Sequence record: LC778249.1
Length of the DNA: 64,000 nucleotides
Strand: one strand, 5' to 3'
Part shown: positions 2,141-58,610 of the stretch, piece after piece
How the letters are laid out: each line of letters begins with the position of its first letter
How positions within the stretch are numbered: the stretch's first letter is position 1
The notes under the pieces: model-generated
The model's database searches: none
Told to the model about the DNA's origin: nothing
What the model saw: only the letters and a program-made list of their open reading frames with translations
Translations under genes and position numbers: made by a program

Positions 2141-2179
2141 TTGACGTGCGGTCATTCATATGAGATAATGACCGCACGT
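2141..2179 (+). promoter_or_regulatory. sigma70-type promoter inside a 13-bp inverted repeat
   Basis: TTGACG(2141)-17-GATAAT(2164) with TGn; arms 2144-2156 and 2167-2179. Confidence 0.7.
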
Positions 2180-2194
2180 TATGAGAAGGAGATA

Positions 2195-2257
2195 ATGTTT
2201 ATTATGAGAATCAAAAGCGTTAAACTAATCAAACCTGACAAGAAAAGGAAACTGTAA
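2195..2257 (+). CDS. possible 20-aa basic peptide
   Basis: AAGGAG SD, ATG..TAA (MFIMRIKSVKLIKPDKKRKL), ends 1 nt before rIIB. Confidence 0.3.
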   Translation: MFIMRIKSVKLIKPDKKRKL

Positions 2258-2258
2258 A

Positions 2259-3557
2259 ATGGCTAAACTGACTGAACAACAAAAAGCACGTATTCTGGCT
2301 GGCACTCTGGGTCGTGGCGTACTGGCTCGCGAACTGAACATCGGCGAATCCGCAGCTCGTAAAATGATCGAACTCGTAAAAGAAGAAGATCGACTGGCTA
2401 AGGCAAAACAGCCGAGCAACGGTGTTACCGAAGCTATGCGCAAAGAGATTCTGGAAGGCAAACTGGGTCGCACTGTTCTGGCCAAGCGTCTGAATATCAA
2501 AGAATCCGAAGCTCGCAAGATCATCGAAGCAATTCGTGGTAACGTAGCTCCGGCAACTAAAGCCGCACCAGTTGCTAAACCTGCTGTTGTTGCTCCGAAA
2601 GCCGCTCCGGTTGTACCGAAGAAAGAGGACACCCATCTGGGCGCTCGATTTCACGAAGCAGACAAACGAGCTGACGAGCGAGACGCAAAAATCGTCGAAC
2701 TCTATACCACCGGTGAGTACAAGTCCCAAAAGACTGTCGCATCCCTGGTTGGTTGCTCTGAAAGCACTGTTGGTGAAGTTCTCAAGCGTAAAGGCGTAAA
2801 AGCCCGTCGTCCTGGTTCTCCGGCTGTTGCACCGGTTGAGACTCCGAAAGAACTCAAGTGGTTCGCGTCTACCAAGTTCATCAACATCATGGCAGACGGT
2901 AAGACTTACACTGCCGATAGCAGTCACGAACAGTTCCGCAAAGCTCTGGATCTGTGTATCGCTGGTGATGTTCTGAAAGCTCTGGGTCTGATCAACGTTG
3001 CTAAGGGTGTTAGCTCTTATGCTAAAGGTCAACTCAAGGTAGAAAATGATGTTGTTACTTATAAGGGTCTGGAAATTGGTGGTTCTGTTGTAAAGCGTAT
3101 CATCAGCAACATGCACGATGGTAAGCCGTTCGGTCACCTGGTAGCGTTTCTCGAAAAACTGCTGCTGAATCCGAACAAGAAAGCAATCGAAGGCCTGTTT
3201 GACTTCCTTGAGCACAACGACATCGAAATCACCACCGACGGTTTCGTCCATGCTTATCGTCGTTGCACTACCGATTATAAAGACTTTTATACCGGTAAGC
3301 TTTCAAACAAAGTAGGTGAAACGGTTAAACTGGATCGTGCTAAGTGTGACAGCTCCGACGCAACTTGTTCTGCCGGTCTCCACGTAGCAGCTCGACACTA
3401 CATCCCGAACTATCACGGTGGTCAAGGTCGTATTCTGCTGGTACAAGTTGATCCTCAGCATGTAGTAGCAGTTCCGAAAGACTACAAGGGCGCAAAAATG
3501 CGTTGCTGTGAGTTCAAGGTTCTGAAAGACATTACCAAAGAGTTTGGTAAGCACTAA
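2259..3557 (+). CDS. rIIB: rIIB protein
   Basis: N-terminal HTH-like repeats; C-terminal DFYTGK..VG..V..DR..CD....TCSAGLH; follows rIIA. Confidence 0.92.
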   Translation: MAKLTEQQKARILAGTLGRGVLARELNIGESAARKMIELVKEEDRLAKAKQPSNGVTEAMRKEILEGKLGRTVLAKRLNIKESEARKIIEAIRGNVAPATKAAPVAKPAVVAPKAAPVVPKKEDTHLGARFHEADKRADERDAKIVELYTTGEYKSQKTVASLVGCSESTVGEVLKRKGVKARRPGSPAVAPVETPKELKWFASTKFINIMADGKTYTADSSHEQFRKALDLCIAGDVLKALGLINVAKGVSSYAKGQLKVENDVVTYKGLEIGGSVVKRIISNMHDGKPFGHLVAFLEKLLLNPNKKAIEGLFDFLEHNDIEITTDGFVHAYRRCTTDYKDFYTGKLSNKVGETVKLDRAKCDSSDATCSAGLHVAARHYIPNYHGGQGRILLVQVDPQHVVAVPKDYKGAKMRCCEFKVLKDITKEFGKH

Positions 3558-3562
3558 TCATC

Positions 3563-3588
3563 AAAAGCCACCTTCGGGTGGCTTTTTT
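3563..3588 (+). terminator. intrinsic terminator
   Basis: AAAAGCCACC-TTCG-GGTGGCTTTTTT. Confidence 0.9.
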
Positions 3589-3601
3589 ATTTTAAAAAGT
3601 G

Positions 3602-3629
3602 TTGACTTGTGATTCTGAACCAGTATACT
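3602..3629 (+). promoter_or_regulatory. early promoter
   Basis: TTGACT-16-TATACT; -10 within palindrome CAGTATACTG; CACATC downstream. Confidence 0.75.
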
Positions 3630-3658
3630 GAGCACATCAACCAAAGAGAGTAAACAAA

Positions 3659-4225
3659 ATGAAATCATTTAAATCGTTTGTCGATTGCATTGAAGTAGAA
3701 AGCGGTGCACGTGGCAAATCGGATGCTGCGTTTGTCTGCTTCTACTGTGACAAAGTGCAGCCATATATCAATACAACCGACCCGACTTTCCCAGAAGACA
3801 AGAAGCACGTTTGGGCACACAAAATCCTTCTGAATGTTCGTTGGGATTCTCGTTTCGGCTTCCCGGGTGGTATGGTAGATGAAGGCGAAAGCCTGATCGA
3901 AGCTGCGGTGCGCGAATGCAAAGAAGAAATTGGATACACTCCGAATCCAGATCATCTGCTGCATCTTTGCACACACAAGATTCCTGAAAGTGGTATGCAT
4001 TGCCACCTGTATATGTGCCGTGTTTCTGAGGAAGCACTGTATGACATGCAACGTTCGGCAATGGATGCGACCCACTCGCGTATCGAAGCTTTCGGAAACG
4101 CGGTAGCGCATCTGACACCACCGACAATCAAACAAATGAAGCACGCCAACTGTGCTCGTACCGTGAAAGCCGAACTGGTAGAAGTATTCGACTTTCTGGG
4201 CGTTGACTATGACTGGAGCAACTGA
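3659..4225 (+). CDS. Nudix hydrolase, NUDT16-like
   Basis: Nudix box GGMVDEGESLIEAAVRECKEEIG preceded by LLNVRWDSRFGFPGG. Confidence 0.85.
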   Translation: MKSFKSFVDCIEVESGARGKSDAAFVCFYCDKVQPYINTTDPTFPEDKKHVWAHKILLNVRWDSRFGFPGGMVDEGESLIEAAVRECKEEIGYTPNPDHLLHLCTHKIPESGMHCHLYMCRVSEEALYDMQRSAMDATHSRIEAFGNAVAHLTPPTIKQMKHANCARTVKAELVEVFDFLGVDYDWSN

Positions 4226-4226
4226 T

Positions 4227-4448
4227 ATGACAATGAAACTCACTGTACCGCAGATGTACGATCTTATCCGCAAGAGCATTTGCGAGACAAGCGACCAATA
4301 CCGTTTTGGTCAAGCGTTGTTCAACAACTTGCCAACGGAACTGGCGGATTCAATCAGAGGTACCGATAAGGATTTCTTCTATTGGGATAACAAACGTCAA
4401 CAAGAGATCATCCAATACTGTTATGATCATATGACGTTCTCCTGTTAA
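4227..4448 (+). CDS. hypothetical protein
   Basis: GGAG SD, ORF coupled to the Nudix gene. Confidence 0.7.
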   Translation: MTMKLTVPQMYDLIRKSICETSDQYRFGQALFNNLPTELADSIRGTDKDFFYWDNKRQQEIIQYCYDHMTFSC

Positions 4449-4562
4449 TAGGAAGACATTGGAGCGATTCCTAGCGATAGTCTATGCGATGATATCAATT
4501 AGTTAAGGAATCGCTCCAAATCGATTTGATGAATAGATAGTATAATAATTAAACTCCAAAAT

Positions 4563-4691
4563 GTCGCGCCAGCGACTGCGAAGCTAATCTATTGATTTCT
4601 AACGAAAAGACAAAGTAAATTCTCATATAAGATATATAAGAGATTTTATTTTCTCTTTTTGTTACATAGTAACAATTAGCGGCTATGCCGC
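4563..4691. repeat. hairpin-bracketed AT-rich element, copy A
   Basis: Core 4604-4667 matches the reverse complement of 49444-49507 at 58/64; terminal hairpins GTCGC-GCCA-GCGAC and GCGGC-TAT-GCCGC. Confidence 0.9.
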
Positions 4692-4695
4692 AGTG

Positions 4696-4724
4696 TTGAC
4701 ACACGTTAGCTAGTGTGTAATAAT
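4696..4724 (+). promoter_or_regulatory. early promoter for ndd
   Basis: GTGTTGACA..TGTAATAAT; same flanks as the promoter at 49602. Confidence 0.7.
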
Positions 4725-4751
4725 TTGATCTCTACTTAATGAGGTAATGAA

Positions 4752-5258
4752 ATGAAATTGAATACCAATCTCCTTATAGGAAATGCACTGTATATCGGTA
4801 CTCTGTTCCCTAACAAAACTGGCATTCTGGAGTTTACTCCTGGCCAAATTGCTCGGGTACCTGTGAATCACGATCTGACTACTCCTGGTTTCTATCTGAT
4901 CGCTACTTTCCCGACTAATGACGCTCGCCTGCGCGATATCGTTAGCGTAAACCACGTCGGTATTCAGAAACGCAAAACTGGCTTTAAGGAAGTTCTGCGT
5001 CGCTTGAATAATCCGCGTACCGAGCAAAACAAAGCATTGGGCGATTACTTGTGCAAGCGATCTACCGAAATCTTCACCGATGCCAGTATCGTAAAAGCTT
5101 GGCGTGAGGTAGAAGCAAAACATCAAGTGTTCTTCGTGTCCTACGCACAAATGCGCGACCTGCTTGGTATCGAAGAATACAGCGCGAAAAACAACGGTAT
5201 CGCTATGATCACCGAGCTTCGCACCAAATATGACTTTATTGGTCGTCTGAAATCCTGA
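4752..5258 (+). CDS. ndd: nucleoid disruption protein Ndd
   Basis: PGFY...HVGIQKRKTGFKEVL resembles T4 Ndd PGFY...YVGNQRSKQGFSAVL; lies between rIIB and 52. Confidence 0.75.
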   Translation: MKLNTNLLIGNALYIGTLFPNKTGILEFTPGQIARVPVNHDLTTPGFYLIATFPTNDARLRDIVSVNHVGIQKRKTGFKEVLRRLNNPRTEQNKALGDYLCKRSTEIFTDASIVKAWREVEAKHQVFFVSYAQMRDLLGIEEYSAKNNGIAMITELRTKYDFIGRLKS

Positions 5259-5260
5259 TG

Positions 5261-5304
5261 TTGACATCTTCAAACAGCCGTGTATAATATCCTGACTGTT
5301 TGAA
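5261..5304 (+). promoter_or_regulatory. early promoter for gene 52 with a 9-bp inverted repeat
   Basis: TTGACA-16-TATAAT; TTCAAACAG(5269)/CTGTTTGAA(5296). Confidence 0.8.
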
Positions 5305-5316
5305 AAGAGGTAAAGA

Positions 5317-6633
5317 ATGCAAGTAACTAAACGTGGAATATCTAGTCTAGTCAATAACGAAGCAAAAGAATTTGCGATGTATACCATTGAGGAACGCGCT
5401 CTACCAAGCATGATAGACGGTCTAAAACCGGTACAACGTTATATTCTTTATAGCGTGTTGAAGAATGCTGGCAAGTCTTTCAAGAAGAATGCTGCAATCG
5501 CTGGTGTGATCTCTGAGTATGGTTACAACCACGGCGAAGTTGCTGCCATGGATGCCGCATGTTTGATGGCTTCTACTTGGAACAACAACTTCCCTATTAT
5601 TCAGGGTCAAGGTAACTTCGGTTCCCGAGCTGTGCAAGAGGGTGCGGCAGCGCGTTATATCTTCTGTACCAAGCACGATCAATTCGATAGCATGTTCAAA
5701 GATATGGAGCTGCTGGAAGAGTCTACCGCTGATGGTTCTGAACTCCCACGCTACTATCTGCCGATTCTGCCAACTGTTCTGCTGAACGGTGTTAGCGGTA
5801 TTGCAACTGGATTTGCTACCAAGATTCTGCCACATAGCTTGGTGAGTGTTGCTAAGTGTGTTGAGCAAGTTCTTAAAACTGGTAAGTGCGACGAACCACA
5901 GATTCAGTTCCCGCTGTTCTATGGTAAAATCACTCCTGTTGTCGATAAGAATCAAGCTTGGACACTGGAAGGCTGTTATGAACTTAGCGGTAAAACTAAG
6001 TTGACAATCAGCGAGATTCCAGTAAAATATGATCGCGTTAAGTATGTGACTTTACTGGATAAGCTGGTAGAGACCGACAAGATTGTTGGCTATGACGAGT
6101 CCAAAATGGATGATCGTGAGTTCTGTTTCAAGATCACGCTAAAGCGTGATTTCGATACCAGTCACGAAAACATCATTAAGACTTTCAAACTGGCTCAGAA
6201 TGTGTCACAATACATTCGCGTAATCGATCAAAACGGCGATTTGAAGCCATACGAAAAAGCTTCTGATCTGATTGTTGATTTCGTGAATTATCGCTTCGGC
6301 ATCTTGCAAAAGCGAATCGATAATGCTATTGTAGCAACGACTGAGAAACTTGGATATGCTCAAGCTAAGGTAGAGTTTATCAAGCTTGTGCTAGACGAGA
6401 AGATCAAGTTCCATAAACAGACTCGCAAGCAAGTAATCGAACAGATTCAAGCTTTCGATAGTCTGAAAGACTATGCCGAACAACTGGTGCAAATGAACTT
6501 GTACCACATGACGGAAGACGAATTGACTAAGCTAGAAAAGCAAGTCACCGAGTTGACCAAAGAAAACGACTTCTGGAAGAACACTTCTCCCAAGAAGCAA
6601 TACCAATCTGACATCAAGGAATTTTTGAAATGA
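5317..6633 (+). CDS. 52: DNA topoisomerase II medium subunit gp52
   Basis: RALPSMIDGLKPVQR, YNHGE, GNFGSR..GAAARY catalytic Tyr motif. Confidence 0.96.
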   Translation: MQVTKRGISSLVNNEAKEFAMYTIEERALPSMIDGLKPVQRYILYSVLKNAGKSFKKNAAIAGVISEYGYNHGEVAAMDAACLMASTWNNNFPIIQGQGNFGSRAVQEGAAARYIFCTKHDQFDSMFKDMELLEESTADGSELPRYYLPILPTVLLNGVSGIATGFATKILPHSLVSVAKCVEQVLKTGKCDEPQIQFPLFYGKITPVVDKNQAWTLEGCYELSGKTKLTISEIPVKYDRVKYVTLLDKLVETDKIVGYDESKMDDREFCFKITLKRDFDTSHENIIKTFKLAQNVSQYIRVIDQNGDLKPYEKASDLIVDFVNYRFGILQKRIDNAIVATTEKLGYAQAKVEFIKLVLDEKIKFHKQTRKQVIEQIQAFDSLKDYAEQLVQMNLYHMTEDELTKLEKQVTELTKENDFWKNTSPKKQYQSDIKEFLK

Positions 6634-6905
6634 GTATTTTTTCATTCTGGCAAGCTGCACAACGCCGTGTTCGTGAATTCGCAGGTGATGCTGAACTGAC
6701 TATCGGTCCTCGTCCGCTGACTGCAATTGTTGAGCAACTGGAACAAACTGTTACCGAGCTGAAAGAGCGTCAAGCCGATGATATTGCACAAGTAGAGCAA
6801 CTGGACAAAGACATCGCCGTTATCCAAAAGCGTCAAGCCAACAAGCGTCAAGATGCGGAACGCGCCGGTCGTATCGCACAGAAGTTCGAGGAACTGCTGA
6901 AATGA
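6630..6905 (+). CDS. hypothetical coiled-coil protein
   Basis: Overlaps the 52 stop; heptad-rich. Confidence 0.7.
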   Translation: MSIFSFWQAAQRRVREFAGDAELTIGPRPLTAIVEQLEQTVTELKERQADDIAQVEQLDKDIAVIQKRQANKRQDAERAGRIAQKFEELLK

Positions 6906-7336
6906 TGCTTGCCACTCGACTCAATCGCGCAATGAAGCAAGAGCAAGTCGAGTGGCATTCTCTATGCCGCGTGTTTGGTTTACTCGGCATATTGATTGTC
7001 GCCGCTAACGTCTTCGCAATGTTGCTGGGTGAACCTACAGAATGGGTACTTGGTCTGAAAATCTGGGGTTCGATGTTTATGTTCGGTGCGTATGTCAAGA
7101 CATATACAATCGAAGCAAACAGAATTCAGACGGTAGGCAACAAGTTCAAGCATATTCTGATCTTCGATTACCTCTGCCGCAAGTCTGGTAATGGTGCAAC
7201 TGAGATCGCAGATTTTGCCGCTGAAAAGTTTGATCGTCTCAGCAAAGACGAGCGAAAGAAAATCGAACGTCAACTAAATATTCAACTGTTGACTTTCTTT
7301 GTGATTGTCGCTACCATACTTGTATTCATTGACTGA
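6902..7336 (+). CDS. hypothetical membrane protein
   Basis: Three hydrophobic segments; ATGA coupling. Confidence 0.65.
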   Translation: MMLATRLNRAMKQEQVEWHSLCRVFGLLGILIVAANVFAMLLGEPTEWVLGLKIWGSMFMFGAYVKTYTIEANRIQTVGNKFKHILIFDYLCRKSGNGATEIADFAAEKFDRLSKDERKKIERQLNIQLLTFFVIVATILVFID

Positions 7337-7345
7337 GGTAAAGAA

Positions 7346-7471
7346 ATGCAAAACTTTGTTGCCAAACATGCTCGCGAATTCAACAATGCCGTTGTCATGG
7401 TTGATCGCAAGAAGCAAAGCAAAAACGCCGGTGCTCGCAAGATGAAGCACAAGGGCAAAATCGACTACTAA
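7346..7471 (+). CDS. 41-aa basic protein, T4 arn.1-like
   Basis: GAGG SD; MQNFVAKHAREFN...KHKGKIDY; absent from the ORF track; syntenic with the T4 arn region. Confidence 0.65.
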   Translation: MQNFVAKHAREFNNAVVMVDRKKQSKNAGARKMKHKGKIDY

Positions 7472-7497
7472 TTCAATTCTGGTTTGAGGTATACAAA

Positions 7498-7815: not shown

Positions 7816-8038
7816 GGGTTTGCCACCCGATTGGCAAGAACAAGAAGTTAAGACGTCGATTCAAATCGACCTGGAAAAATATCAGATGTCAGAGGTTGAC
7901 GTAACCTTAACTCGGGATATTCATAACCGTGTTACGTCAAGCCTAATCGTGCTAAATGACGGACACCAAATTAGATTTAGAGGTAACGCACTCGAAAATG
8001 AGGCGATTACCCTGCGCGAAATAGGCTATGTAGTATGA
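7778..8038 (+). CDS. hypothetical protein (start uncertain)
   Basis: Fills the gap before asiA; ATGA coupling at the stop. Confidence 0.5.
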   Translation: MPLMTLVTGKICEGLPPDWQEQEVKTSIQIDLEKYQMSEVDVTLTRDIHNRVTSSLIVLNDGHQIRFRGNALENEAITLREIGYVV

Positions 8039-8357: not shown

Positions 8358-8359
8358 GT

Positions 8360-9713: not shown

Positions 9714-9725
9714 TTTATCTCCTTT

Positions 9726-29398: not shown

Positions 29399-29423
29399 AA
29401 AGGCTCCTTCGGGAGCCTTTTTT
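29399..29423 (+). terminator. intrinsic terminator
   Basis: AAAGGCTCC-TTCG-GGAGCCTTTTTT. Confidence 0.9.
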
Positions 29424-34293: not shown

Positions 34294-34388
34294 TCAAGAA
34301 TCCCGCTTCGGCGGGATTTTTTTTTTCAAAAGTGCTTGCGTCTTGGTTTCTACCTGCTATTATGACCACATCGAAACGAAACACTGAG
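34291..34388 (+). repeat. terminator plus early promoter cassette, copy 1
   Basis: TAATCAAGAATCCCGC-TTCG-GCGGGAT(T)10CAAAAGTGCTTGC..TATTAT..CCACATCGAAACGAAACACTGAG; near-identical to 39370-39466. Confidence 0.9.
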
Positions 34389-34391
34389 GAA

Positions 34392-34727
34392 ATGATTATG
34401 AACATGTACGGCCCAACTGGTTATCGTCCAATGTACTTCGGTCTGAGCAACTGTGAGCGTTTCGACCACAACGGTCGCGAAACTGCGATTCGTACTGGTA
34501 AAGGTTGTGCATCAGTCAAGACTCTGGTAAAGAAAGCTCTCAAGAAAGGTGAGTTTCCTTTCTCCGAAAAAGCTAATCTGTGTCTGAACAACGAAGAAAT
34601 CAAGTTCAACGACATGGTAGAAGGTCAAGAATTCGGTATGACTCTGCGAGTTGGCAAGAACGATATTCGTGTTTGTGCTGATGTATGTGATGGTATCCTG
34701 CGTATCGACATCATCCGCGTAGGCTAA
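34392..34727 (+). CDS. hypothetical early protein
   Basis: GAGGA SD after the cassette. Confidence 0.75.
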   Translation: MIMNMYGPTGYRPMYFGLSNCERFDHNGRETAIRTGKGCASVKTLVKKALKKGEFPFSEKANLCLNNEEIKFNDMVEGQEFGMTLRVGKNDIRVCADVCDGILRIDIIRVG

Positions 34728-35307: not shown

Positions 35308-35345
35308 TTGACGTGGTCCTAGTACCTGTTATTATGACCACATCA
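35308..35345 (+). promoter_or_regulatory. early promoter
   Basis: TTGACG-16-TATTAT with TGn; ACCACATC leader shared with the cassettes. Confidence 0.8.
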
Positions 35346-35384
35346 AGACGAAACAGTCTTCCAAACAAAACTGAGGAATACATC

Positions 35385-35869: not shown

Positions 35870-36138
35870 TAGTTGACATCAAAAACGCGGAGAGTATAAT
35901 CCACGTAATCGGTCAAGTTCGCTGGCATGAAAATCAAGGCTCAACATTGTGGAATAACGCCGCGAATGAAATTTTCCACATGGGAATGTTGTCAGATCGA
36001 GTTCTCAAGCCGTTTGTTGAATTAACAAAAAAGATGGGCACAACTTTGATGGGAGACTCAACAAGTCGAGTTAACATCGATGACATGTTCGTACCATTTA
36101 TCCTTAATGCATACCGTTTCTTGGAGCAAGCAAAATGA
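35866..36138 (+). CDS. hypothetical protein
   Basis: GAGGT SD; contains an internal promoter TTGACA-16-TATAAT at 35873-35900. Confidence 0.6.
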   Translation: MIVDIKNAESIIHVIGQVRWHENQGSTLWNNAANEIFHMGMLSDRVLKPFVELTKKMGTTLMGDSTSRVNIDDMFVPFILNAYRFLEQAK

Positions 36139-39372: not shown

Positions 39373-39466
39373 TCAAGAATCCCGCTTCGGCGGGATTTTT
39401 TTTTCAAAAGTGCTTGCATCGAGACATGAGCCTGTTATTATAGCCACATCGAAACGAAACACTGAG
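39370..39466 (+). repeat. terminator plus early promoter cassette, copy 2
   Basis: Direct repeat of 34291-34388; T run one shorter, spacer diverged. Confidence 0.9.
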
Positions 39467-39474
39467 AAAACATC

Positions 39475-39834: not shown

Positions 39835-39889
39835 TTGACTGAGTTATGTGGGCATGATAATATGCCAACAACAAAATGAGGAAGACATC

Positions 39890-43117: not shown

Positions 43118-43123
43118 TAACAA

Positions 43124-43155
43124 GAAAGGCGAGTCAATGACTCGCCTTTTCTTTT
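43124..43155. terminator. bidirectional terminator overlapping the HNH stop
   Basis: AAAGGCGAGTC-AAT-GACTCGCCTTT with A/T tracts on both sides. Confidence 0.8.
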
Positions 43156-43835
43156 TCTGCTCTGCGTCTTGCGTTGTAAGCTAAACCGGCAAGTCGTCTG
43201 ATTTCTTTATTTTCTTCCGACATTGGCTTTCCTTTCTTAGCCGCACTCATGTTTGCTTTGCTTTCTTCTGAATGCGTTCTGCCTTTATTTTTGGAACTAA
43301 TTAATTGTCGTCTTTCCTTATCCTTCATTCTTTCTTCGTCTGTCATAGATTCAAGTCGTTTTTTATGTGCGGCTGACATCTTCAATTTAGTTTCATCCGA
43401 CAACTTTCTTCCCTTATTCATTTCACCCATACGCTTCGAATTATTCAGTTGCTTTTCTGTTCTAGGTATAGTAGAATGACCAATGATAAGTTTTTTCTTA
43501 TGTTCTTCTGTTATCGTTTTGCCCTTATGCAGATTACTGGTGTATATTGCATAATCGCGTTTTAGCCAGCCGAACAACTTGTTATTAACTCGCTTATCGT
43601 TCTTAGAACGAGTCATTATCCTAGCAGCAACGATAAGCGATGAAACTTCCGGGTGCATCTTAACGAGCAGTTGGTGAGCCAAGAAGTGTTCTTCTGGAGT
43701 TAGAATAGCTATATTGCTAGGATCATTACTTCCACCCATGCATTTTGGGAGAATGTGGTGTTTTTCTGTATAGCCTTCGATAACTCTATCAATAGAGCGG
43801 TCTATCAAAGACTTGTAAATTTTATGATAATTCAT
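43134..43835 (-). mobile_element. free-standing HNH homing endonuclease with NUMOD3-type repeats
   Basis: EKHHILPKCMGGSND..NIAILTPEEHFLAH; H(S/T)EE(S/H)K..MS..KG repeats; AT-rich; antisense orientation. Confidence 0.88.
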
Positions 43836-43922
43836 TTGATGTTCCCGATTACACACGACACTGATAAAGTGGAAGGGGCGTGTCGGGATACCCTTTTCGA
43901 ATGGCCGTTCTATCCACAATGA

Positions 43923-43929
43923 TATTTAG
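43923..43929 (-). promoter_or_regulatory. late promoter CTAAATA for the HNH gene
   Basis: Same motif as upstream of 34, fibre B and alt. Confidence 0.5.
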
Positions 43930-43944
43930 TTCTTATGGAGTTAT

Positions 43945-44100
43945 ATGTTAAAGCTAAGTTTATGCGTTGCTGCTAATGTGACATGCTTCACCCTTGTTAG
44001 CGTATTCGGAAAGATGGGATTATTTTTAGGAGTCCTATTGACATTGTCCGTGTGTGGCATTATATTGGTAGCACAACACAAAATGAGGAAAACAGTATGA
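43945..44100 (+). CDS. 51-aa two-TM membrane protein
   Basis: GGAG SD; MLKLSLCVAANVTCFTLVSVFGKMGLFLGVLLTLSVCGIILVAQHKMRKTV; ATGA coupling to the next gene; not in the track. Confidence 0.55.
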   Translation: MLKLSLCVAANVTCFTLVSVFGKMGLFLGVLLTLSVCGIILVAQHKMRKTV

Positions 44101-47512: not shown

Positions 47513-47541
47513 TTGACATCATATCGATGTCATGAGAGAAT
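47513..47541 (+). promoter_or_regulatory. early promoter
   Basis: TTGACA-17-GAGAAT with TGn. Confidence 0.55.
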
Positions 47542-47564: not shown

Positions 47565-48191
47565 ATGATGATCAGTTTTCAAGAAGCGAATTTGATCGAT
47601 GTAATCAAAGGCATGATCGCTCGCAAAACTACCGACACCAACAAGATCTATATTGCACATGGATGTAACTGCTTTGCCGCAATGGGAGCTGGATTCGCCG
47701 CACAAGTGGCGCGTCACTTCCCAGCAGCAGAGAAAGCAGATCGTCTGTATGCGAAAGAATTCAAGACAGAAGTTGACAAAGAAACGCATCAACTCGGCAC
47801 ACTGAGCGCAGCGGAAATCGGACATGGCACCGTGATGTTCAACCTGTATTCTCAACTTTATCCGGGCGCCGATTTTCGTCTTGATGCTTTCGAACGTGCA
47901 TTCGATGATATGATGCTCCGTCTTGAGGAAGCACACAATACCGAAGATGTTAAGCCGCTTGTTCTTATGCCTAGGATTGGCGCTGGTATCGGTGGTGGTA
48001 AGTGGGAAGAGATTCTGGAAGTAATCAAGAATTACGAAAACGTCGCCGACATTATCGTGTTTGACTATAAGCCGCTGGTAATCGTCAGCAGTTGCAAGAC
48101 TCACTATGAGGATCATAGTCCGTTTGTCAGCACGAAAGCGGAAGATGTCGATCTCGCACGATACATGGTAGAAGATGTTGAACAAGATTAA
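47565..48191 (+). CDS. macrodomain protein (T4 tk.4-like)
   Basis: IAHGCNCFAAMGAGFA, FNLYSQ, MPRIGAGIGGGKW. Confidence 0.9.
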   Translation: MMISFQEANLIDVIKGMIARKTTDTNKIYIAHGCNCFAAMGAGFAAQVARHFPAAEKADRLYAKEFKTEVDKETHQLGTLSAAEIGHGTVMFNLYSQLYPGADFRLDAFERAFDDMMLRLEEAHNTEDVKPLVLMPRIGAGIGGGKWEEILEVIKNYENVADIIVFDYKPLVIVSSCKTHYEDHSPFVSTKAEDVDLARYMVEDVEQD

Positions 48192-48212
48192 GCGCCTTCG
48201 GGCGCTTTTTTT
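48190..48212 (+). terminator. intrinsic terminator
   Basis: AAGCGCC-TTCG-GGCGCTTTTTTT. Confidence 0.9.
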
Positions 48213-48268
48213 GTTTGTGTTGTTTACCACATCATGATATTATGATAGTTCACTGAGAGGAGATTTTT

Positions 48269-49435: not shown

Positions 49436-49539
49436 TTAAGAAGATGTTACAAAAAGAGAAAATAAAATCTCTTATAATACTTTAATGAGAATTTACTTTG
49501 TCTTTTCTTTGGAGATCAATAAGTTAGCGGCTACGCCGC
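49419..49539. repeat. hairpin-bracketed AT-rich element, copy B (inverted)
   Basis: Core 49444-49507; hairpins GCGAC-GCCA-GTCGC and GCGGC-TAC-GCCGC. Confidence 0.9.
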
Positions 49540-49601
49540 GATCTTCGATTTCTGAACGTGTATAGATTATAATCAAACCGATCTGTTACCAGAAAATAGT
49601 G

Positions 49602-49630
49602 TTGACAGATCGGTATCTTGATGTAATAAT
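49602..49630 (+). promoter_or_regulatory. early promoter
   Basis: GTGTTGACA..TGTAATAAT; -35 overlaps the right arm of ACCGATCTGT/ACAGATCGGT. Confidence 0.7.
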
Positions 49631-51706: not shown

Positions 51707-51710
51707 TCGC

Positions 51711-51735
51711 AAGGGGAGAAATCCCCTTGTTTCTT
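51711..51735 (+). terminator. probable terminator
   Basis: AAGGGGA-GAAA-TCCCCTT-GTTTCTT. Confidence 0.6.
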
Positions 51736-51779
51736 CTGTGCTATTGCTGTGATAGCATAGAGAGAAACAAGGAGTTTTT

Positions 51780-52067
51780 ATGTTCGCGATAACACACTTT
51801 GACGATAATCAACGTAGATCGGTTGTTGTTCAAGATGGTCGAGCTTGTATTTTCAAGACAAAACCTCTTGCAAAATCGTATCAAGTTGATATACTGGTAC
51901 CAAAGTTAAGTGAGCTAATTGAAGTTGGTGAACCAAATGGAAAGACTTTCTTTGGTAAGCCCAAATTCAAAAAGATTTCACTCGAAGATGTTCGAAAGAT
52001 CAAGAGAATGCTCGATACTATGATGATCGAACCGGTTACTAAAATCACATTTGGTAAAAATCGATGA
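51780..52067 (+). CDS. hypothetical protein
   Basis: AGGAG SD. Confidence 0.7.
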   Translation: MFAITHFDDNQRRSVVVQDGRACIFKTKPLAKSYQVDILVPKLSELIEVGEPNGKTFFGKPKFKKISLEDVRKIKRMLDTMMIEPVTKITFGKNR

Positions 52068-53563: not shown

Positions 53564-53565
53564 TG

Positions 53566-53612
53566 TTTACTGTGTCGCGTCAATGAGCTATTATAGCTTT
53601 GTTGACGCGACA
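53566..53612 (+). promoter_or_regulatory. promoter with a long imperfect inverted repeat centred on the -10
   Basis: TTTACT-17-TATTAT; TGTCGCGTCAA/TTGACGCGACA plus inner AGCTA/TAGCT. Confidence 0.6.
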
Positions 53613-53676
53613 AGCGAAACGAAAAGGGAGTTGCACTTAGATGCAACGTGTGTTAAACTCATTTGGAAGTAAATGA

Positions 53677-54084
53677 ATGAGTGAATTAGGATTTAGAGCA
53701 TTTGATGAACAAGTTGTCCTCGAATGCAACGCCGCTCGTAAGGGCGAAGAACTGAAAACTGAGTCCGGTTTTATTCTCGGAACTCGAAATCAAGGTGACA
53801 TTCCTCTGTATGGAACTGTCGTTTCTGTTGGTGAAAATTGTCCTGACAGTATCAAAGAACTGATTGGCAAAGACGTCGCATTGCCGCAAGGTGGCGGGAT
53901 TTACAGTAATGTCCCGGATCCGCGAATGGCATACGGTTTGATTCCTCGCGATAGCAAGGAAGCAAGAATCTTTGTAACAATGCATTACAAGGGCATTCGT
54001 ACCATCTATGATGGTCGTCCCGAAGGTGAAGTAGCTAAACCGGCCACACCTGCATTCAAATCAACTTTGACTCTACTCGGATAA
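53677..54084 (+). CDS. 31: co-chaperonin gp31
   Basis: TESGFILG..QGDIP..VVSVG..P; VPDP; FVTMHYKGI. Confidence 0.9.
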   Translation: MSELGFRAFDEQVVLECNAARKGEELKTESGFILGTRNQGDIPLYGTVVSVGENCPDSIKELIGKDVALPQGGGIYSNVPDPRMAYGLIPRDSKEARIFVTMHYKGIRTIYDGRPEGEVAKPATPAFKSTLTLLG

Positions 54085-54097
54085 TTAAGGAACTAAA

Positions 54098-54382
54098 ATG
54101 TCTGTAAAAACTTTTGTTGAAACTCTGGTACGTGGTGCTATCGTCTCTCAGCGTCAAGCTTGGAACTCTGGTAGCGAAAATCAAGGCGCATCTATCGACG
54201 TTCTGGCTGTTGCTCGCGATCTGGCAGCAAAACTGCCGAAGAACAAGAAAGCGGTTGAACTGGTCGAGTATGTTGATCAGTGGGACGTCGAGCAAGGTTA
54301 TGGCCTGCGCTTCGCTAAACCTCTGGATGTCCATGTCGTTCGCGGCATCGAATCTGAGCTGAAAAGCTACCTCAAAGCCTAA
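54098..54382 (+). CDS. rIII: lysis inhibition accessory protein rIII
   Basis: QRQAWNSGSENQGASIDV..FAKPL; follows 31. Confidence 0.88.
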   Translation: MSVKTFVETLVRGAIVSQRQAWNSGSENQGASIDVLAVARDLAAKLPKNKKAVELVEYVDQWDVEQGYGLRFAKPLDVHVVRGIESELKSYLKA

Positions 54383-54464
54383 TCTGGCAACGAGTTTTGA
54401 ATCTGGCGGAAAGTACGCTTTCCGCAAATAAACAAACATCAAAGAAACGATAAGGAATTACAAA

Positions 54465-54884
54465 ATGGCTAAGAAATCTCAACGCGGTAAAGGTCACTTC
54501 GCAATCTACAAAGCAACTGGTCTGTTCGCTAAGAACAAAGAACGTGATCTGAAACGTCATGTGGCAGTCCACGGTGACGACTCTGTAGCGGTTGCAGCTC
54601 TGAAAGCTGTTCCTGCCAAGTCTTCTCGCTGGGGCTATACCGGCCCGGAGAACCCGAAGAAGGGCGCTAAAGACTCTCGACTGGATGTTGCTCTGGCTCG
54701 CGCCGTTCGCAAGGCAGAACGTGTTTACAAGTTCGTCAAAGACAAGGATGCCGTTGTTCTGGGTCGCCAGAATCGCATCGTTGACGCCGAGACTCAGCGC
54801 ACTGAATTCAAATTCAAGCGTCATGCTCCGCGTCCGGAAGCTGCTCCGGTAAAGGCCAAGAAGCCTGTTCGCCGCGGCAAATAA
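54465..54884 (+). CDS. basic protein, 30.9-like
   Basis: KKGAKDSRL...RAV resembles T4 30.9; follows rIII. Confidence 0.55.
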   Translation: MAKKSQRGKGHFAIYKATGLFAKNKERDLKRHVAVHGDDSVAVAALKAVPAKSSRWGYTGPENPKKGAKDSRLDVALARAVRKAERVYKFVKDKDAVVLGRQNRIVDAETQRTEFKFKRHAPRPEAAPVKAKKPVRRGK

Positions 54885-54890
54885 AATCTG

Positions 54891-54913
54891 AAAGCCACCT
54901 TCGGGTGGCTTTT
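54891..54913 (+). terminator. intrinsic terminator
   Basis: Same stem-loop as 3563-3588. Confidence 0.9.
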
Positions 54914-54932
54914 TCGTAACTAAGGAGAAAGA

Positions 54933-55145
54933 ATGAAAAACTTTATGGGATATGTTTTTGCGCTTGCAATCGATCTAGTTCTGGTGTATGGTTTAGTTCT
55001 AAACAAACAAATCATGGATGTTTCATACGACGAAGTATTTTACCTTGTCTATGGATGCATCTTTTACGGACTAATTACATACATTAGCTGTCGAGAATCA
55101 TTCGGTGTTAATGTACTGAAATACAATAAAATCATAGAGGTTTGA
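54933..55145 (+). CDS. small membrane protein
   Basis: AAGGAG SD, two hydrophobic stretches. Confidence 0.65.
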   Translation: MKNFMGYVFALAIDLVLVYGLVLNKQIMDVSYDEVFYLVYGCIFYGLITYISCRESFGVNVLKYNKIIEV

Positions 55146-55146
55146 A

Positions 55147-55605
55147 ATGGAAATGCAGAAAGTAAACGGTGAACATCACGATTCCGAAATCGTTCTGATT
55201 GGTCATTTGGAAGTAGGCTATGCTGCCGGTGGATATATCTACAATGATAAAGCCGGTCGATTCGCTGATGGCATTCAAGTGGTTACGTCTTCGGTTGTTG
55301 AAATTGGTGACGATTGGTTCCGAACCCGAAATACCGTTTACAAAATTCTGAAAGGTATTCCAGTTGTTGACTCGGTAGATCGTATCCCGACCACACACGA
55401 AATCGCTCGGGCTATGCTCGCAGCAAAAGACGTTCCGCTGTATGCACTTCGATATGAAGGTGATCTGGAAGGTGAATACACCTCGATGATGTCCCGTATC
55501 AGTTGCATCGATTACGGTGTCGTCAAGGGTGCCGCTGTTGTTGTTCAAGAGGAACAAGAAATCGACATCGCCGAACTGGAAGATCAACTCTATAATGGAA
55601 AGTGA
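55147..55605 (+). CDS. hypothetical protein
   Basis: GAGG SD; GYIYND..RFADG..TS..TRNTVY. Confidence 0.7.
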   Translation: MEMQKVNGEHHDSEIVLIGHLEVGYAAGGYIYNDKAGRFADGIQVVTSSVVEIGDDWFRTRNTVYKILKGIPVVDSVDRIPTTHEIARAMLAAKDVPLYALRYEGDLEGEYTSMMSRISCIDYGVVKGAAVVVQEEQEIDIAELEDQLYNGK

Positions 55606-55768
55606 TACGGGATTAGCTAGACTAGCTAAGAGTTTAGAACGTAACGCCAGACGTCGCCAGAGACGATATGGCACGATTCAACCACAAATGAGCATGGATG
55701 CTATGTCTAAGTTATTGGAAGCTGCTAGAAAGCGTCCTGTTAATCTTAGGAGTGAAATGACTTGCTAG
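55595..55768 (+). CDS. small basic hypothetical protein
   Basis: Fills the gap; overlaps neighbours. Confidence 0.45.
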   Translation: MESDTGLARLAKSLERNARRRQRRYGTIQPQMSMDAMSKLLEAARKRPVNLRSEMTC

Positions 55769-56238
55769 ACATATCAGTGTCGGCACTTTATCCAGCTAAT
55801 GAGTTATCGAACTTAGCGAAACATGAATTCATTTTCGATGGTGTTCGTTGTGGTAGCATGGAGGGACTGTTGCAGTCCCTCAAATTCCAAGATGTTGAAA
55901 AACAGATTGCGATTGCTGCTATGTGGGGAACTGGGGCTAAGTTTCGCGGTGCTAAGAAAGCTTGGTACAACGATCAAACACTTTACTGGAAAGGTGTGCC
56001 GTTTAGTAGACACTCAGAGGCTTACCAGAACTTACTGGATAATGCCTATGATGAACTATTTGTTCAATCAGAAAGTTTTAGAAAAGCGTTGACATCAAGT
56101 GGAAACACTGTATTATGTCACTCTATTGGTCATAATGACCCGATGCGAACAATTTTAACCGTTGAGGAATTCTTATGCAGGATGAAAAGATTAAGATCGC
56201 TATTGTCGGCGGCGAACCAATCGGACGCGCCGCGCTGA
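55762..56238 (+). CDS. 30.3: 30.3-like NADAR-family protein
   Basis: LSNLA..F.FDG...SMEGLLQ, TLYWKG.PFSR, TILT.EEF. Confidence 0.85.
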   Translation: MLDISVSALYPANELSNLAKHEFIFDGVRCGSMEGLLQSLKFQDVEKQIAIAAMWGTGAKFRGAKKAWYNDQTLYWKGVPFSRHSEAYQNLLDNAYDELFVQSESFRKALTSSGNTVLCHSIGHNDPMRTILTVEEFLCRMKRLRSLLSAANQSDAPR

Positions 56239-56501
56239 TTCAAGCGTTGATGGACGATGAACGTGTTACAGTTCTGATGGAAAACATGGAAATGACAGTC
56301 GAACAAATAGCCGATAAAGTCGAACAGTTTCAAGAAGAACTGAACGAAGAAAAGAAAAACCGGATTAAACTCGTTCAATCCATCAGCATGATCAACGATT
56401 TGACTTGGGAATCTCCGGCTGAATTCAGCACTAGCGCGTTTCGAGAAACTCCGCATTGGTTGCAACATGGTAACAAGCGCGGTATCTACAAATGTCGGTA
56501 G
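56175..56501 (+). CDS. hypothetical coiled-coil protein
   Basis: GAGGA SD. Confidence 0.6.
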   Translation: MQDEKIKIAIVGGEPIGRAALIQALMDDERVTVLMENMEMTVEQIADKVEQFQEELNEEKKNRIKLVQSISMINDLTWESPAEFSTSAFRETPHWLQHGNKRGIYKCR

Positions 56502-56734
56502 CTTACAAAATCGATGGGATTCCTGTTGACTCGTTCATTTATCAAGCGTATATTAACCGAAAGCACGAAAATGGTGAGGCAGTTCTTTATACCGAGGATT
56601 ACATCGTCGTTACTTACTTCACGTTACAATCGTCATTTACGGTGACCTATGACCGCTGCGGCAACCCTATATCCAATTCTGCAACCGGAAACGACTCGCG
56701 TTTCCTTAAGGCAAGACATGATCTTACAATCTGA
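56492..56734 (+). CDS. hypothetical protein
   Basis: Coupled ORF. Confidence 0.55.
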   Translation: MSVAYKIDGIPVDSFIYQAYINRKHENGEAVLYTEDYIVVTYFTLQSSFTVTYDRCGNPISNSATGNDSRFLKARHDLTI

Positions 56735-57383
56735 AAAGAAAATTTTCGTCACTGATGTTGACGGCGTTTTGCTCTCATGGGCTTCCAATCTGCCGTTCTT
56801 CTGTGCTGAATACAATATTCCGACGGACGTTGTAATCGATCTCATTATCGATGAACGATTCCGTAAAGCTGGAGAGATTTTCCAATGCAATCAAGAGCAT
56901 GGCGAAAATCTGATCCGCATGTATAATAACTCAAAGTGGTTTCGTGGTCTGAAAGCATATGACGACGCGCTCCTGTGGGTTAACAAGCTGAAATCAAAAT
57001 ATGATTTCGTTGCAACAACTGCTATTGGCTCTGACTTCCAAGTCAGTGTTAATCGAATGTCAAATCTCAATGTGCTGTTTCCTGGCGCATTTAAAGAAAT
57101 TTTGACTTGTGATCACCACGAATCTAAGCGTAAAATGTTCCTTCACGTAAAAGAGAAATACGGCGAACAGAATGTTGTAGGCTATGCTGATGATCTTTAT
57201 CATCACTTGCAAACATTCCATACCGTCTTTTCCGCTGACGTACCGAAGTTTCATGTACTGCGTGGACAAAACAAAAGCTATAAATCGAGTATGACAAGTC
57301 GTTATGACGTATCCGGTTTTGGCGAAATCGCCAATATCCTGAGTGCGAGAGAATCAATCAACGAAGATCTGGACGGTATCTAA
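56718..57383 (+). CDS. 30.2: 30.2-like HAD phosphatase / 5'-nucleotidase
   Basis: TDVDGVLLSW..LPFF, LNVLFPGAF, ADDLYHH. Confidence 0.88.
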   Translation: MILQSEKKIFVTDVDGVLLSWASNLPFFCAEYNIPTDVVIDLIIDERFRKAGEIFQCNQEHGENLIRMYNNSKWFRGLKAYDDALLWVNKLKSKYDFVATTAIGSDFQVSVNRMSNLNVLFPGAFKEILTCDHHESKRKMFLHVKEKYGEQNVVGYADDLYHHLQTFHTVFSADVPKFHVLRGQNKSYKSSMTSRYDVSGFGEIANILSARESINEDLDGI

Positions 57384-57775
57384 TGCCTATTTTGAGAGAG
57401 AAAGTAAACGGTAGTTATGTTAGCTTGACTGCTACCAAAGTTGACTTATTTGGTAACAAGTTGGAAATTGGCGATTTGGTAGCTCACTCTGGTAACGGTT
57501 ACGGTATTGTCACTCGCGTGACTAAAGCTGGTGCTCGGGTACAAGAGTTCGGTAGTTTAGATCTTGGCAATGAATATAACATCCAAGATGTTGACAAAGC
57601 ACAACGTTGGCATATGCCAGCTTGGACTTGTGACAAAATGGTTAAGTGTATGACTGTTCAACGGGAGATCGTTGAAGTTCTACCTTCTCAGGATTTCGTC
57701 GTCAAATACACCATGAACAACGGATTCCACTTCTTCGCGAAATTCGATGTTTCTTATATGGGAGAAATCGTGTGA
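57383..57775 (+). CDS. hypothetical protein
   Basis: TAATG coupling; DLFGNKLEIGD motif. Confidence 0.7.
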   Translation: MPILREKVNGSYVSLTATKVDLFGNKLEIGDLVAHSGNGYGIVTRVTKAGARVQEFGSLDLGNEYNIQDVDKAQRWHMPAWTCDKMVKCMTVQREIVEVLPSQDFVVKYTMNNGFHFFAKFDVSYMGEIV

Positions 57776-58182
57776 AGAAGTGTTATGTTTTCATCAATCG
57801 TTATCTCGGAGATAAACAAGCTGGCATCCAAGCCGCTCACGCTATCGCACGGATGATGATACAGCCTCCAAAAGAAGTGTTGCGTTGGGCAGTAGAACAT
57901 GAGACACTGGTGCTATTGAATGGCGGGGACCATAATGATCTCGAACGTCTGATGGAATACAACTGCGATGAAACTAAAATGTTTGAATTTCGTGAGCCGG
58001 GATTAAACAACGCTATTACTGCTGTTGCTTATGTTCCGAATGAAGCACATGAAAATCGAATCGATGTTTTCAAAGCATATCAGAAGACTGGATTTGAATA
58101 TGAGCTTAATACCGGTTCAAATGCAGTGACAAACGACTATCTTTGCGATCTGATTACTCGGTCGCATTCATTCAGAGGTTAA
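57772..58182 (+). CDS. peptidyl-tRNA hydrolase II-like protein
   Basis: YVFI...GIQAAHA...W...TLVLL...FREPGLNNAITAVA. Confidence 0.55.
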   Translation: MKKCYVFINRYLGDKQAGIQAAHAIARMMIQPPKEVLRWAVEHETLVLLNGGDHNDLERLMEYNCDETKMFEFREPGLNNAITAVAYVPNEAHENRIDVFKAYQKTGFEYELNTGSNAVTNDYLCDLITRSHSFRG

Positions 58183-58183
58183 T

Positions 58184-58573
58184 ATGGGGTTATGGAATCG
58201 TGCTATTAAAGCACTAAGAGCAAAGACAGTTCAACAATGTAACATCGTCGTTAATGGCAAGAATATCGTCGGTAGAGATCTGGTGATTGACGGCAAGCGT
58301 GTCATTGTTGATGGTGTCGAGATTGACAACTCGCCGATTATCAACATCGAGATTCAAGGCAACTGTGAATTCGTGAACCTTGGAGCTGGTAATGTTACCG
58401 TTCGAGGTAACGTCCATGATGTCGAGACTGGTTCGGGTGATATCAGCATATGTGGCAACGTTGATGGTAACGTAGAAACTGGCGCTGGTGCGGTTGATGT
58501 TGGCGGTTACATTCATGGCGACGTTAGCACTGGCGCGGGTGATATCATTTATCAAAAACCATCGATTCACTGA
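58184..58573 (+). CDS. beta-solenoid (bactofilin-like) protein
   Basis: Repeats GNVHDVETGSGDI / GNVDGNVETGAGAV / GYIHGDVSTGAGDI. Confidence 0.6.
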   Translation: MGLWNRAIKALRAKTVQQCNIVVNGKNIVGRDLVIDGKRVIVDGVEIDNSPIINIEIQGNCEFVNLGAGNVTVRGNVHDVETGSGDISICGNVDGNVETGAGAVDVGGYIHGDVSTGAGDIIYQKPSIH

Positions 58574-58610
58574 TTGACAAGACTGTGGCACCTGCTATAA
58601 TGGTGCCACA
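58574..58610 (+). promoter_or_regulatory. early promoter for ligase with a 9-bp inverted repeat
   Basis: TTGACA-16-TATAAT with TGn; TGTGGCACC/GGTGCCACA. Confidence 0.85.

Follow-up and report, generated by a model that had tools for sequence, protein, structure and literature searches.

The 64,000-nucleotide stretch analysed here (the window) corresponds to positions 161841-225840 of the Aeromonas phage phiWae14 (LC778249.1), an Aeh1-like T4-type phage in which early promoters are found interleaved with inverted repeats. The first 8 kb of the window matched phiWae14 161841-169840 at 100% and phiAS5 at 98.5% identity. The next relatives, Aeh1, Ah1, avDM12-TAAL, PX29 and AsFcp_1/2/4, are approximately 77% identical, and only 13 records exceed 75% DNA identity. 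According to the annotation of phiAS5 and Aeh1, the window carries a T4-type early region comprising rIIA, rIIB, nudE, an ndd-like gene, 52 and asiA. After these come the long tail-fibre genes, on the opposite strand, and then rnh, dsbA, 33, 59, 32, frd, td, rnlA, pseT, cd, 31, rIII, 30 (ligase), alt and dda. For genome-wide counts the window was combined with the neighbouring 50 kb of phiWae14 (L016), which contain early genes throughout, giving 114 kb. Promoters are throughout those predicted from the sequence, and no Rfam family matched within the window.

Four early promoters of the window are closely interwoven with a strong repeat:

2141-2181, plus strand: rIIB early promoter with the -35 box at 2141-2146 and the -10 box at 2164-2169; 13-bp stem 2144-2156/2167-2179 with a 10-nt loop.
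5261-5304, plus strand: gene 52 early promoter with the -35 box at 5261-5266 and the -10 box at 5283-5288; 9-bp arms 5269-5277/5296-5304 flank the -10 box.
53566-53612, plus strand: gene 31 early promoter with the -35 box at 53566-53571 and the -10 box at 53589-53594, within an imperfect palindrome of about 41 nt; outer stem 53573-53583/53602-53612 (11 bp) and inner stem 53586-53591/53593-53598 (6 bp).
58574-58610, plus strand: DNA ligase (gene 30) early promoter with the -35 box at 58574-58579, overlapping the upstream TGA, and the -10 box at 58596-58601; arms 58584-58592/58602-58610.

At all four sites 0-3 nt separate the upstream stop codon from the -35 box, the rIIB promoter beginning 3 nt past the rIIA stop codon. 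The flank upstream of the -35 box is clearly AT-rich at rIIB and moderately so at 52, 31 and 30, and genes 52 and 30 are preceded by TTGACA-16-TATAAT, 27-29 nt upstream of their start codons. Three of the four sites have their repeat centred at the -10 box or close to it. We determined the longest perfect inverted repeat with the centre of the -10 hexamer in its loop and compared it with 1000 shuffles of the flanks in which both hexamers were kept (mean of about 4.3 bp). The rIIB stem, the gene 52 arms and the gene 31 stem each reached p<0.001 in this perfect-repeat test, and the 9-bp arms of the ligase promoter p=0.003. RNA-fold z-scores of individual sites, calculated against dinucleotide shuffles, were -6.9 for rIIB, -4.7 for gene 31 and -4.5 for the ligase. 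The original prediction, which from the letters of the window had listed eight inverted repeats at early promoters, named these four among them, and all eight are present in the sequence at the coordinates given there.

A 20-codon open reading frame (ORF), equipped with its own strong Shine-Dalgarno (SD) sequence, occupies 2196-2258, downstream of the rIIB promoter, and stops 1 nt short of the rIIB ATG. At the nucleotide level it shows high conservation in Aeh1, Ah1, avDM12 and PX29, in which a TGA shortens the ORF to 16 codons. It may encode a leader peptide or serve as a coupling device for rIIB.

Perfect repeats of at least 8 bp were strongly overrepresented in the 3555 non-coding bases of the window, with about 20 observed compared to 1.4 expected, an excess of about 14-fold. 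Members with a tetraloop are ordinary terminators. Six members have large loops; of these, four span a -10 box, one flanks the UP element and -35 box of the promoter at 49602, and one (51725) pairs with an SD. For the 114 kb, promoters were defined by a -35 box with at most one mismatch to TTGACA or TTTACA, a spacer of 16-18 bp and a -10 box of the form xAxxxT with at most two mismatches, the spacer and -10 box being non-coding and located 12-140 nt upstream of a coding sequence (CDS) on the same strand. The 38 promoters obtained by this rule had a mean z of -1.98 (Wilcoxon p 3.6e-6). A z below -2 was found for 17 of them and a z below -3 for 11, each of the latter with p≤0.01 where about 0.4 such promoters were expected; shuffles in this rule-based set, as in the coliphage set described below, keep mononucleotide content only, and in the rule-based set both hexamers were fixed. 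As a group these promoters thus fold better than their shuffles, in agreement with the general claim of the original prediction.

The register of the stems relative to the -10 box varied, with stems in the spacer, in the UP/-35 region, around the -10 box or across the start site. A tight form recurs in L016, with arms of 7-9 bp, the 5' arm ending at the T of the extended -10 'TG' and the 3' arm beginning at -8/-7, and several L016 promoters show it with 8-9-bp arms and 6-nt loops. Elsewhere in L016 the stem extends across the -35 box (genes 44 and 43), occupies the spacer (nrdA) or spans the start site (gene 39). The proposal that inverted repeats repeatedly flank the early -10 box is therefore borne out beyond chance at four sites and as a genome-wide tendency, but the other four listed repeats are not individually significant and the register is not fixed on the -10 box.

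A by-product of the promoter consensus, or chance as such, could create short repeats at these positions, as the TG at -15/-14 and the AT at -8/-7 provide 2-3 free pairs. Consistent with this, the palindrome at 3621 and the 5-bp arms at 39851 and 48231 match shuffles, and the inner pairs of a common 'CAT-GnTAnn-ATG' core derive from the extended -10 motif. At the four strong sites this explanation is refuted by arms of 9-13 bp with p≤0.003 each, by the proportion of 11/38 promoters with p≤0.01 and by the compensatory evolution of the stems detailed below. It stands for the weak sites, and as an account of the elements altogether it is extremely improbable.

The same signal, equally strong, was obtained from a T4-like coliphage. 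In the Tequatrovirus genome OZ035789.1, analysed with an ORF-based version of the pipeline, 41 promoters showed a mean z of -1.90, with 19 below -2. Embedded stems at early promoters of this genome include examples with 9-10-bp arms around TATAGT and several with the SD in the 3' arm.

Orthologous regions of Aeh1, Ah1, avDM12, PX29 and AsFcp_4 were compared, which together with the window represent three lineages: phiWae14/phiAS5, Aeh1/Ah1/avDM12 and PX29/AsFcp_4. All four strong stems are kept in the three lineages, which are about 77% identical, with different arm sequences. The core arm at rIIB reads GTGCGGTCATT in the window; the Aeh1 lineage has ATGGCGCTAT there and the PX29 lineage ATGGGACTA, and the partner arm is perfectly matched in each. 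Covariation was scored with RNAalifold as pairs altered on both sides with pairing retained. Such changes affected 7/14 pairs at rIIB, 3/14 at gene 52 and 2/16 at the ligase, where G·U changes in Aeh1 and PX29 were also seen, and no pair at gene 31, which displays three one-sided changes to G·U. Over the four sites this amounts to 12 pairs changed on both sides, plus the G·U replacements. The outer gene 31 stem of Aeh1 and avDM12 persists, with G·U changes, alongside a replaced inner stem. PX29 carries a homing-endonuclease gene (L010:10095-11172) that separates 31.1 from 31 and is inserted precisely at the promoter/stem-loop element; the gene 31 promoter is retained and the nested stem is lost. 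Outside the window, the stem at gene 39 changes from GGGGAG/CTCCCC to TGTGGAG/CTCCACA across lineages, and two promoters carry non-homologous repeats at the same place in different lineages. Wider conservation of the gene 52 element was not supported: T4 is without an intergenic gap before 52, and in AS-zj a conventional terminator precedes the promoter. Retention of the stems through compensatory and G·U substitutions in the aligned sequences indicates selection on pairing at the level of the sense RNA.

The arms differ among promoters as well as among orthologous promoters and share no motif, which argues against operators. A shared arm motif or an operator for a dimeric regulator was therefore rejected, in line with the original prediction, which had seen no single operator in the differing arms.

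The two strands of the repeats are not equivalent. The gene 52 stem of the Aeh1 lineage contains two internal G·U pairs, and the ligase stems of Aeh1 and PX29 also need G·U pairing. Folding energies of sense versus antisense strand were -17.2 versus -7.0 kcal/mol (Aeh1) and -19.7 versus -8.0 kcal/mol (avDM12) for gene 52, and -20.2 versus -12.1 kcal/mol (Aeh1) and -21.5 versus -12.3 kcal/mol (PX29) for the ligase. Among 18 structured promoters, the sense strand was more stable in 13 and the antisense strand in 3, and unstructured promoters were without such bias. This strand bias favours a structure of the sense-strand RNA. Since the 5' arm is situated upstream of the predicted start site, the hairpin is expected to form only in RNA reading through from upstream promoters. 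This had been one of two options considered in the original prediction, and it is favoured by the compensatory changes in three lineages and by the sense-only G·U stems at 52 and the ligase.

The other option placed the repeats at the DNA level, where they would extrude as cruciforms or single-strand hairpins under supercoiling and help or hinder promoter melting. Such a role would be compatible with the centring on or near the -10 box at three of the four strong sites, with the tight 8-9-bp arms and 6-nt loops of several L016 promoters, a geometry less hostile to extrusion, and with the perfect Watson-Crick cores at rIIB and gene 31. However, the stems that depend on G·U pairs, at 52 in the Aeh1 lineage and at the ligase in Aeh1 and PX29, would present A·C mismatches when paired on the complementary strand. 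Cruciform extrusion is disfavoured by loops of 10-18 nt, and the loops here are up to 18 nt long. A register ranging from spacer-only to start-site-straddling fits no single melting mechanism, and extrusion would take the -10 box out of the duplex and destroy the -35/-10 spacing. Moreover, the structures are absent where an upstream terminator is present, which is unexplained if they serve initiation. We therefore consider a DNA-level role quite improbable and do not maintain the supercoiling-assisted melting that had been proposed. The suggested connection to the topoisomerase gene (52) is coincidental, because the same architecture precedes rIIB, 31, the ligase and many unrelated small ORFs.

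Two other candidates were considered and rejected. An antisense terminator was discarded as a T-rich minus-strand flank occurs at rIIB only and the distribution of G·U pairs implicates the sense strand. Stimulation of frameshifting or stop codon read-through by a post-stop hairpin was discarded as there were no slippery sequences.

The strength of nesting was related to the distance between the promoter and the upstream stop codon. Promoters no more than 25 nt from the stop had a mean z of -2.8, with 12/22 below -2, versus a mean z of -0.9 and 4/16 below -2 for those farther away (Mann-Whitney p=0.004; Spearman rho 0.51, p=0.001, over 38 promoters). Likewise, the short-gap promoters of the Tequatrovirus genome had a mean z of -3.2 compared to -1.0 for long-gap promoters. 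Promoters behind a canonical terminator (3602, 47513, L016:20042) or a divergent gene (44038, L016:46126) were unstructured. Canonical terminators of the window were located at 3563-3586, 29399-29420, 34299-34318, 39378-39397 and 54891-54912. At the rIIA junction, relatives have a plain hairpin without a promoter, whereas the phiWae14 hairpin has the promoter inside. The best hairpin in the 75 nt before the -35 box did not correlate with absent nesting (rho 0.07), a crude score that is uninformative because random coding-region folds contaminate it.

Repeats that exceed chance, are maintained by compensatory change, pair in the sense strand only in some lineages and are tied to short upstream gaps are probably best explained as composites of the promoter-early stem-loop (PeSL) type, i.e. 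strong sigma70-type early promoters interleaved with a stem-loop that acts in read-through RNA. PeSLs were defined in RB49/phi1 (Arbiol et al. 2010; PMC2839356) and extended to PST/T4 and nt-1/KVP40 (Comeau et al. 2014; PMC4122927). The arrangement in the window is this published one, described in 2010 for other T4-type phages, and was not recognised as such in the original prediction. Since the same signal was found in the T4-like coliphage, the architecture is general to T4-type phages and had already been named.

We infer that these elements would act at the RNA level, in attenuation of read-through or in stabilisation of the upstream message. At least the 5' arm would lie upstream of the promoter's own start, which would confine the hairpin to RNA reading through from the upstream gene, and the hairpin would most likely be the intercistronic stem-loop of the upstream transcription unit. 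It could attenuate or terminate read-through, or act as a 3' barrier that stabilises the upstream message, and the downstream gene would be re-supplied from its own promoter. With the -35 box abutting the stop codon, and promoter, SD and start codon sharing about 55 nt, the arms have to use the 17-bp spacer and the first transcribed bases, leaving the -10 box in the loop. On the simplest reading, each early cistron boundary would carry a stem-loop, in the form of a conventional terminator before the promoter where room exists. The putative attenuator function is drawn by analogy from one reporter assay in another phage, in which a stem-loop of RB49/phi1 cut lacZ expression as much as rrnB T1, acting as a terminator/attenuator of upstream transcription (PMC2839356).

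Several observations weigh against the interpretation as PeSL-type composites. The covariation covers only three independent lineages. In phiWae14 itself the gene 52 stem is weak (-9.9 kcal/mol, fold z -1.3), the modest z-score being due to an A/U-rich stem with a big loop; orthologous stems in the relatives reach -17 to -20 kcal/mol. The cores at rIIB and gene 31 are pure Watson-Crick and equally stable on both strands, so that these two stems may act at the DNA level. A T-run was not found after any of the four strong stems, whose 3' flanks hold 2-4 T per 8 nt and no run, and these stems are therefore not canonical intrinsic terminators; one nested stem with a T-run was present at L016:15014. 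Some nested stems occur where an upstream hairpin had room (L016:3070, 20456). Finally, the strong stems of phiWae14 are unique and precede the core genes rIIB, 52, 31 and 30, whereas PeSLs are repeated motifs found by variable ORFans.

To relate the stems to translation, the accessibility of the SD and AUG was computed from the partition function for read-through and own-promoter RNAs of rIIB, gene 52 and gene 31, the gene 31 case being incomplete, and no consistent difference was found between the two RNAs. For gene 52 of the Aeh1 lineage the unpaired probability was somewhat lower in the read-through RNA (0.36-0.39 vs 0.55). The distance from stem end to SD was 0-6 nt for gene 52, rIIB and the ligase (5 nt at the ligase), with the gene 52 stem ending directly against its own SD, and the stem of gene 31 was located further upstream. 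T4-style occlusion of the ribosome-binding site (RBS) was thus rejected for the strong sites of the window, as the SDs lie outside the stems and accessibility is about equal for rIIB, 52 and 31; on this point the original prediction was correct for all four strong cases.

RBS occlusion does occur elsewhere. At L016:49012-49064, upstream of a CYTH-domain gene, the SD is part of the 3' arm and the 5' arm precedes the start site; the -35 box of this early promoter is placed in the loop of a T-run terminator, and in read-through RNA the SD is paired with the T-rich tail of the terminator. The orthologs in Aeh1, avDM12 and PX29 are alike (L007:1383-1433). L016:49012 and its orthologs represent T4-style RBS occlusion with an early promoter. 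In the window, 51725-51734 pairs with 51763-51772 (10 bp), covering the SD of the gene at 51780. The terminator hairpin 51710-51717/51722-51729 shares bases with the 5' arm 51725-51734, and a second conserved hairpin is located between the arms. The structures within 51710-51772 are mutually exclusive, and the sequence is nearly invariant in all lineages.

These cases of SD pairing, together with the gene 52 stem lying against its SD, are what could be expected if the hairpins served translational discrimination, causing the downstream gene to be translated differently from read-through RNA than from own-promoter RNA according to the logic of T4 e, soc and 49, but with an early promoter. The unpaired probability of SD and AUG, being about the same in both RNAs for rIIB, 52 and 31, speaks against this, and we regard it as unlikely.

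Besides the four strong elements, the window contains further promoter-associated sites and copies of an AT-rich element:

3563-3630, plus strand: terminator hairpin with T-run at 3563-3586, followed by a promoter with the -35 box at 3602-3607 and the -10 box at 3624-3629.
4696-4724, plus strand: promoter with stem 4699-4704/4713-4718 in the interval separating the -35 box from the -10 box; z -2.6.
35308-35346, plus strand: promoter cassette in which an interrupted stem, made up of 35308-35311/35343-35346 and 35313-35318/35336-35341, encloses the -10 box at 35330-35335.
35873-35916, plus strand: consensus promoter-like site inside a CDS, with near-repeat 35885/35901.
39835-39870, plus strand: promoter with a short tight stem 39851-39855/39862-39866 and a 6-nt loop.
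47513-47541, plus strand: promoter with stem 47514-47520/47526-47532 overlapping the -35 box and spacer, preceded by a terminator; z -1.3.
48231-48246, plus strand: 5-bp arms around GATATT; z +1.1, chance level.
49577-49630, plus strand: 10-bp repeat 49577-49586/49605-49614 that flanks the UP element and overlaps the -35 box of the promoter at 49602.
4616-4690 and, inverted, 49444-49476: window copies of an AT-rich element; the L016 copies are at L016:12218-12260 and L016:29216-29254.

Four of these sites are the weak members of the original list. The palindrome at 3621-3630 consists of the -10 hexamer and two flanking bases and folds at chance level (z +0.5). The near-repeat 35885/35901 is borderline (z -2.6; 2/200 shuffles fold equally well), and no alignable ortholog was found among the relatives. 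The stem 39851/39862, with a z of -1.4 to -1.9, is not significant alone and is a weak member of the 'CAT-GnTAnn-ATG' form. The promoter assignment at 48231 is doubtful; a canonical terminator hairpin lies upstream at 48191-48206, and in the Aeh1 lineage a different 6-bp repeat is found at this place. The cassette at 35308-35346, absent from the original list, is significant (z -4.4). It has an identical copy 79 kb away in the same genome (L016:6208) and is also present in avDM12, and relatives have other cassettes at this site. A shared leader directly follows the -10 box at 34364-34395, 35330-35360, 39441-39472 and several positions in L016, and is repeated at many small-ORF promoters; its elements are TATTAT, GACCAC or AGCCAC, ATCGAAACGAAAC..., and CTGAGG. 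The duplicated 35308 cassette and the shared leaders are typical of the behaviour of mobile PeSL cassettes.

Such repeated cassettes (35308 = L016:6208), the shared leader after the -10 box at 34364, 35330 and 39441, the swapping or absence of cassettes between lineages and the homing-endonuclease insertion at the gene 31 element of PX29 would also be expected if the stem-loops were recombination substrates only, which drive the shuffling of modules or the formation of mini-circles between cassettes, as has been suggested for PeSLs, and had no function in RNA. The strong stems are unique and stand beside core genes, and hence offer no homology for exchange, and selection on pairing with tolerance of G·U points to RNA. 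Recombination as the sole role is therefore very improbable.

Further structured or variable elements were noted in the window. The AT-rich element listed above, about 45-75 nt long and itself an imperfect 24-nt hairpin, is present in 4 copies in long intergenic gaps, one of them inverted. A GCGGCTAYGCCGC hairpin lies near the window copies, and the element had no Rfam match. Two conserved hairpins were detected within coding sequence. A 12-bp stem (6910-6957) starts 8 nt past the start codon of the ORF 6902-7336 and shows the succession C-G, U·G, U-A among the lineages, and a 10-bp stem (7896-7940), about 95 nt upstream of the asiA-like gene, has compensatory changes in PX29 and Aeh1. Comparison of the two annotations revealed about 790 bp in phiWae14 that are extra relative to phiAS5 (43118-44096), including a minus-strand ORF at 43134-43835. 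The limits of this segment are a bidirectional terminator (43125-43149) on one side and the promoter at 44038 on the other.

Beyond the role as PeSL-type composites, the nesting itself could be functional and more than a matter of packing, in that a 5' arm upstream of the start site would let the hairpin mark every read-through (delayed-early) RNA and distinguish it from own-promoter (immediate-early) RNA, or in that the repeats would contribute at the DNA level to the abrupt shut-off of early promoters. We consider this doubtful. If marking were true, decay, processing or termination could differ between the two kinds of RNA from one gene. The lineages compared here supply defined, naturally compensated variants of the stems. 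For annotation, the lesson is that a dyad around a phage promoter does not equal an operator.

Several known systems combine promoters or cistron boundaries with hairpins. In early promoters of the phage N4 virion RNA polymerase and in single-strand promoters such as Frpo of the F plasmid, what is recognised is a DNA hairpin, by a dedicated polymerase or in the single-stranded state. They resemble the elements described here in having an inverted repeat at the promoter, but the hexamers in phiWae14 are ordinary duplex sigma70 elements at the usual spacing, and the way the arms pair is in keeping with RNA. T4 has stable C(UUCG)G intercistronic hairpins, reportedly described by Tuerk et al. in 1988. 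Like these and the intrinsic terminators of T4, the nested stems are stable hairpins at cistron boundaries; unlike them, they have large loops containing promoter hexamers, no tetraloop and no T-run.

In T4, late promoters within hairpins provide translational control of genes e, soc, 49 and I-TevI, and mobE of Aeh1 is controlled in this way as well (PMC3014915). The T4 reviews consulted describe late-promoter hairpins only (e, soc, 49, I-TevI) and make no mention of early-promoter dyads. As in e, soc and 49, the promoter is located in or beside the 5' arm, so that only longer transcripts initiated upstream form the hairpin. In contrast to these genes, where the SD or AUG is sequestered and the promoters are late gp55 promoters, the four elements of the window are early and sigma70-type with the SD outside the stem.

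The closest counterpart is the PeSL, whose stem-loop is positioned in the interval separating the -35 box from the -10 box, overlapping either box, in the upstream AT-rich region or just before the start site, most commonly between the boxes or in overlap with the -10 box, and G-T pairs are marked in the published figure (PMC2839356). The phiWae14 elements share the intergenic sigma70-type promoter with 16-18-bp spacing followed by SD and start codon, a stem-loop in the described positions and the use of G·U (G-T) pairs. PeSLs of RB49 typically have G-run/C-run stems and are a conserved repeat in hyperplastic regions beside ORFans; unlike these stems, the four strong stems of phiWae14 are without a T-run. 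The repeat and junction trait of PeSLs is shown by the identity of 35308 with L016:6208, the shared leaders at 34364/35330/39441 and the swaps between lineages, and not by the four strong stems. PeSL-like sequences had already been noted in Aeh1 near gene 43 (PMC2839356). In the accessible portions of the PeSL papers (PMC2839356, PMC4122927), an analysis of the Aeh1/phiAS5 clade, cross-lineage covariation and a link to stop distance were not found. With our data, PeSL-type interleaving now includes the Aeromonas phages of the Aeh1/phiAS5 group and the promoters of the core genes rIIB, 52, 31 and 30. Relative to those portions, the data add to the PeSL the selection on pairing, the replacement of terminators by nested stems at short gaps and the same signature in a T4-like coliphage.

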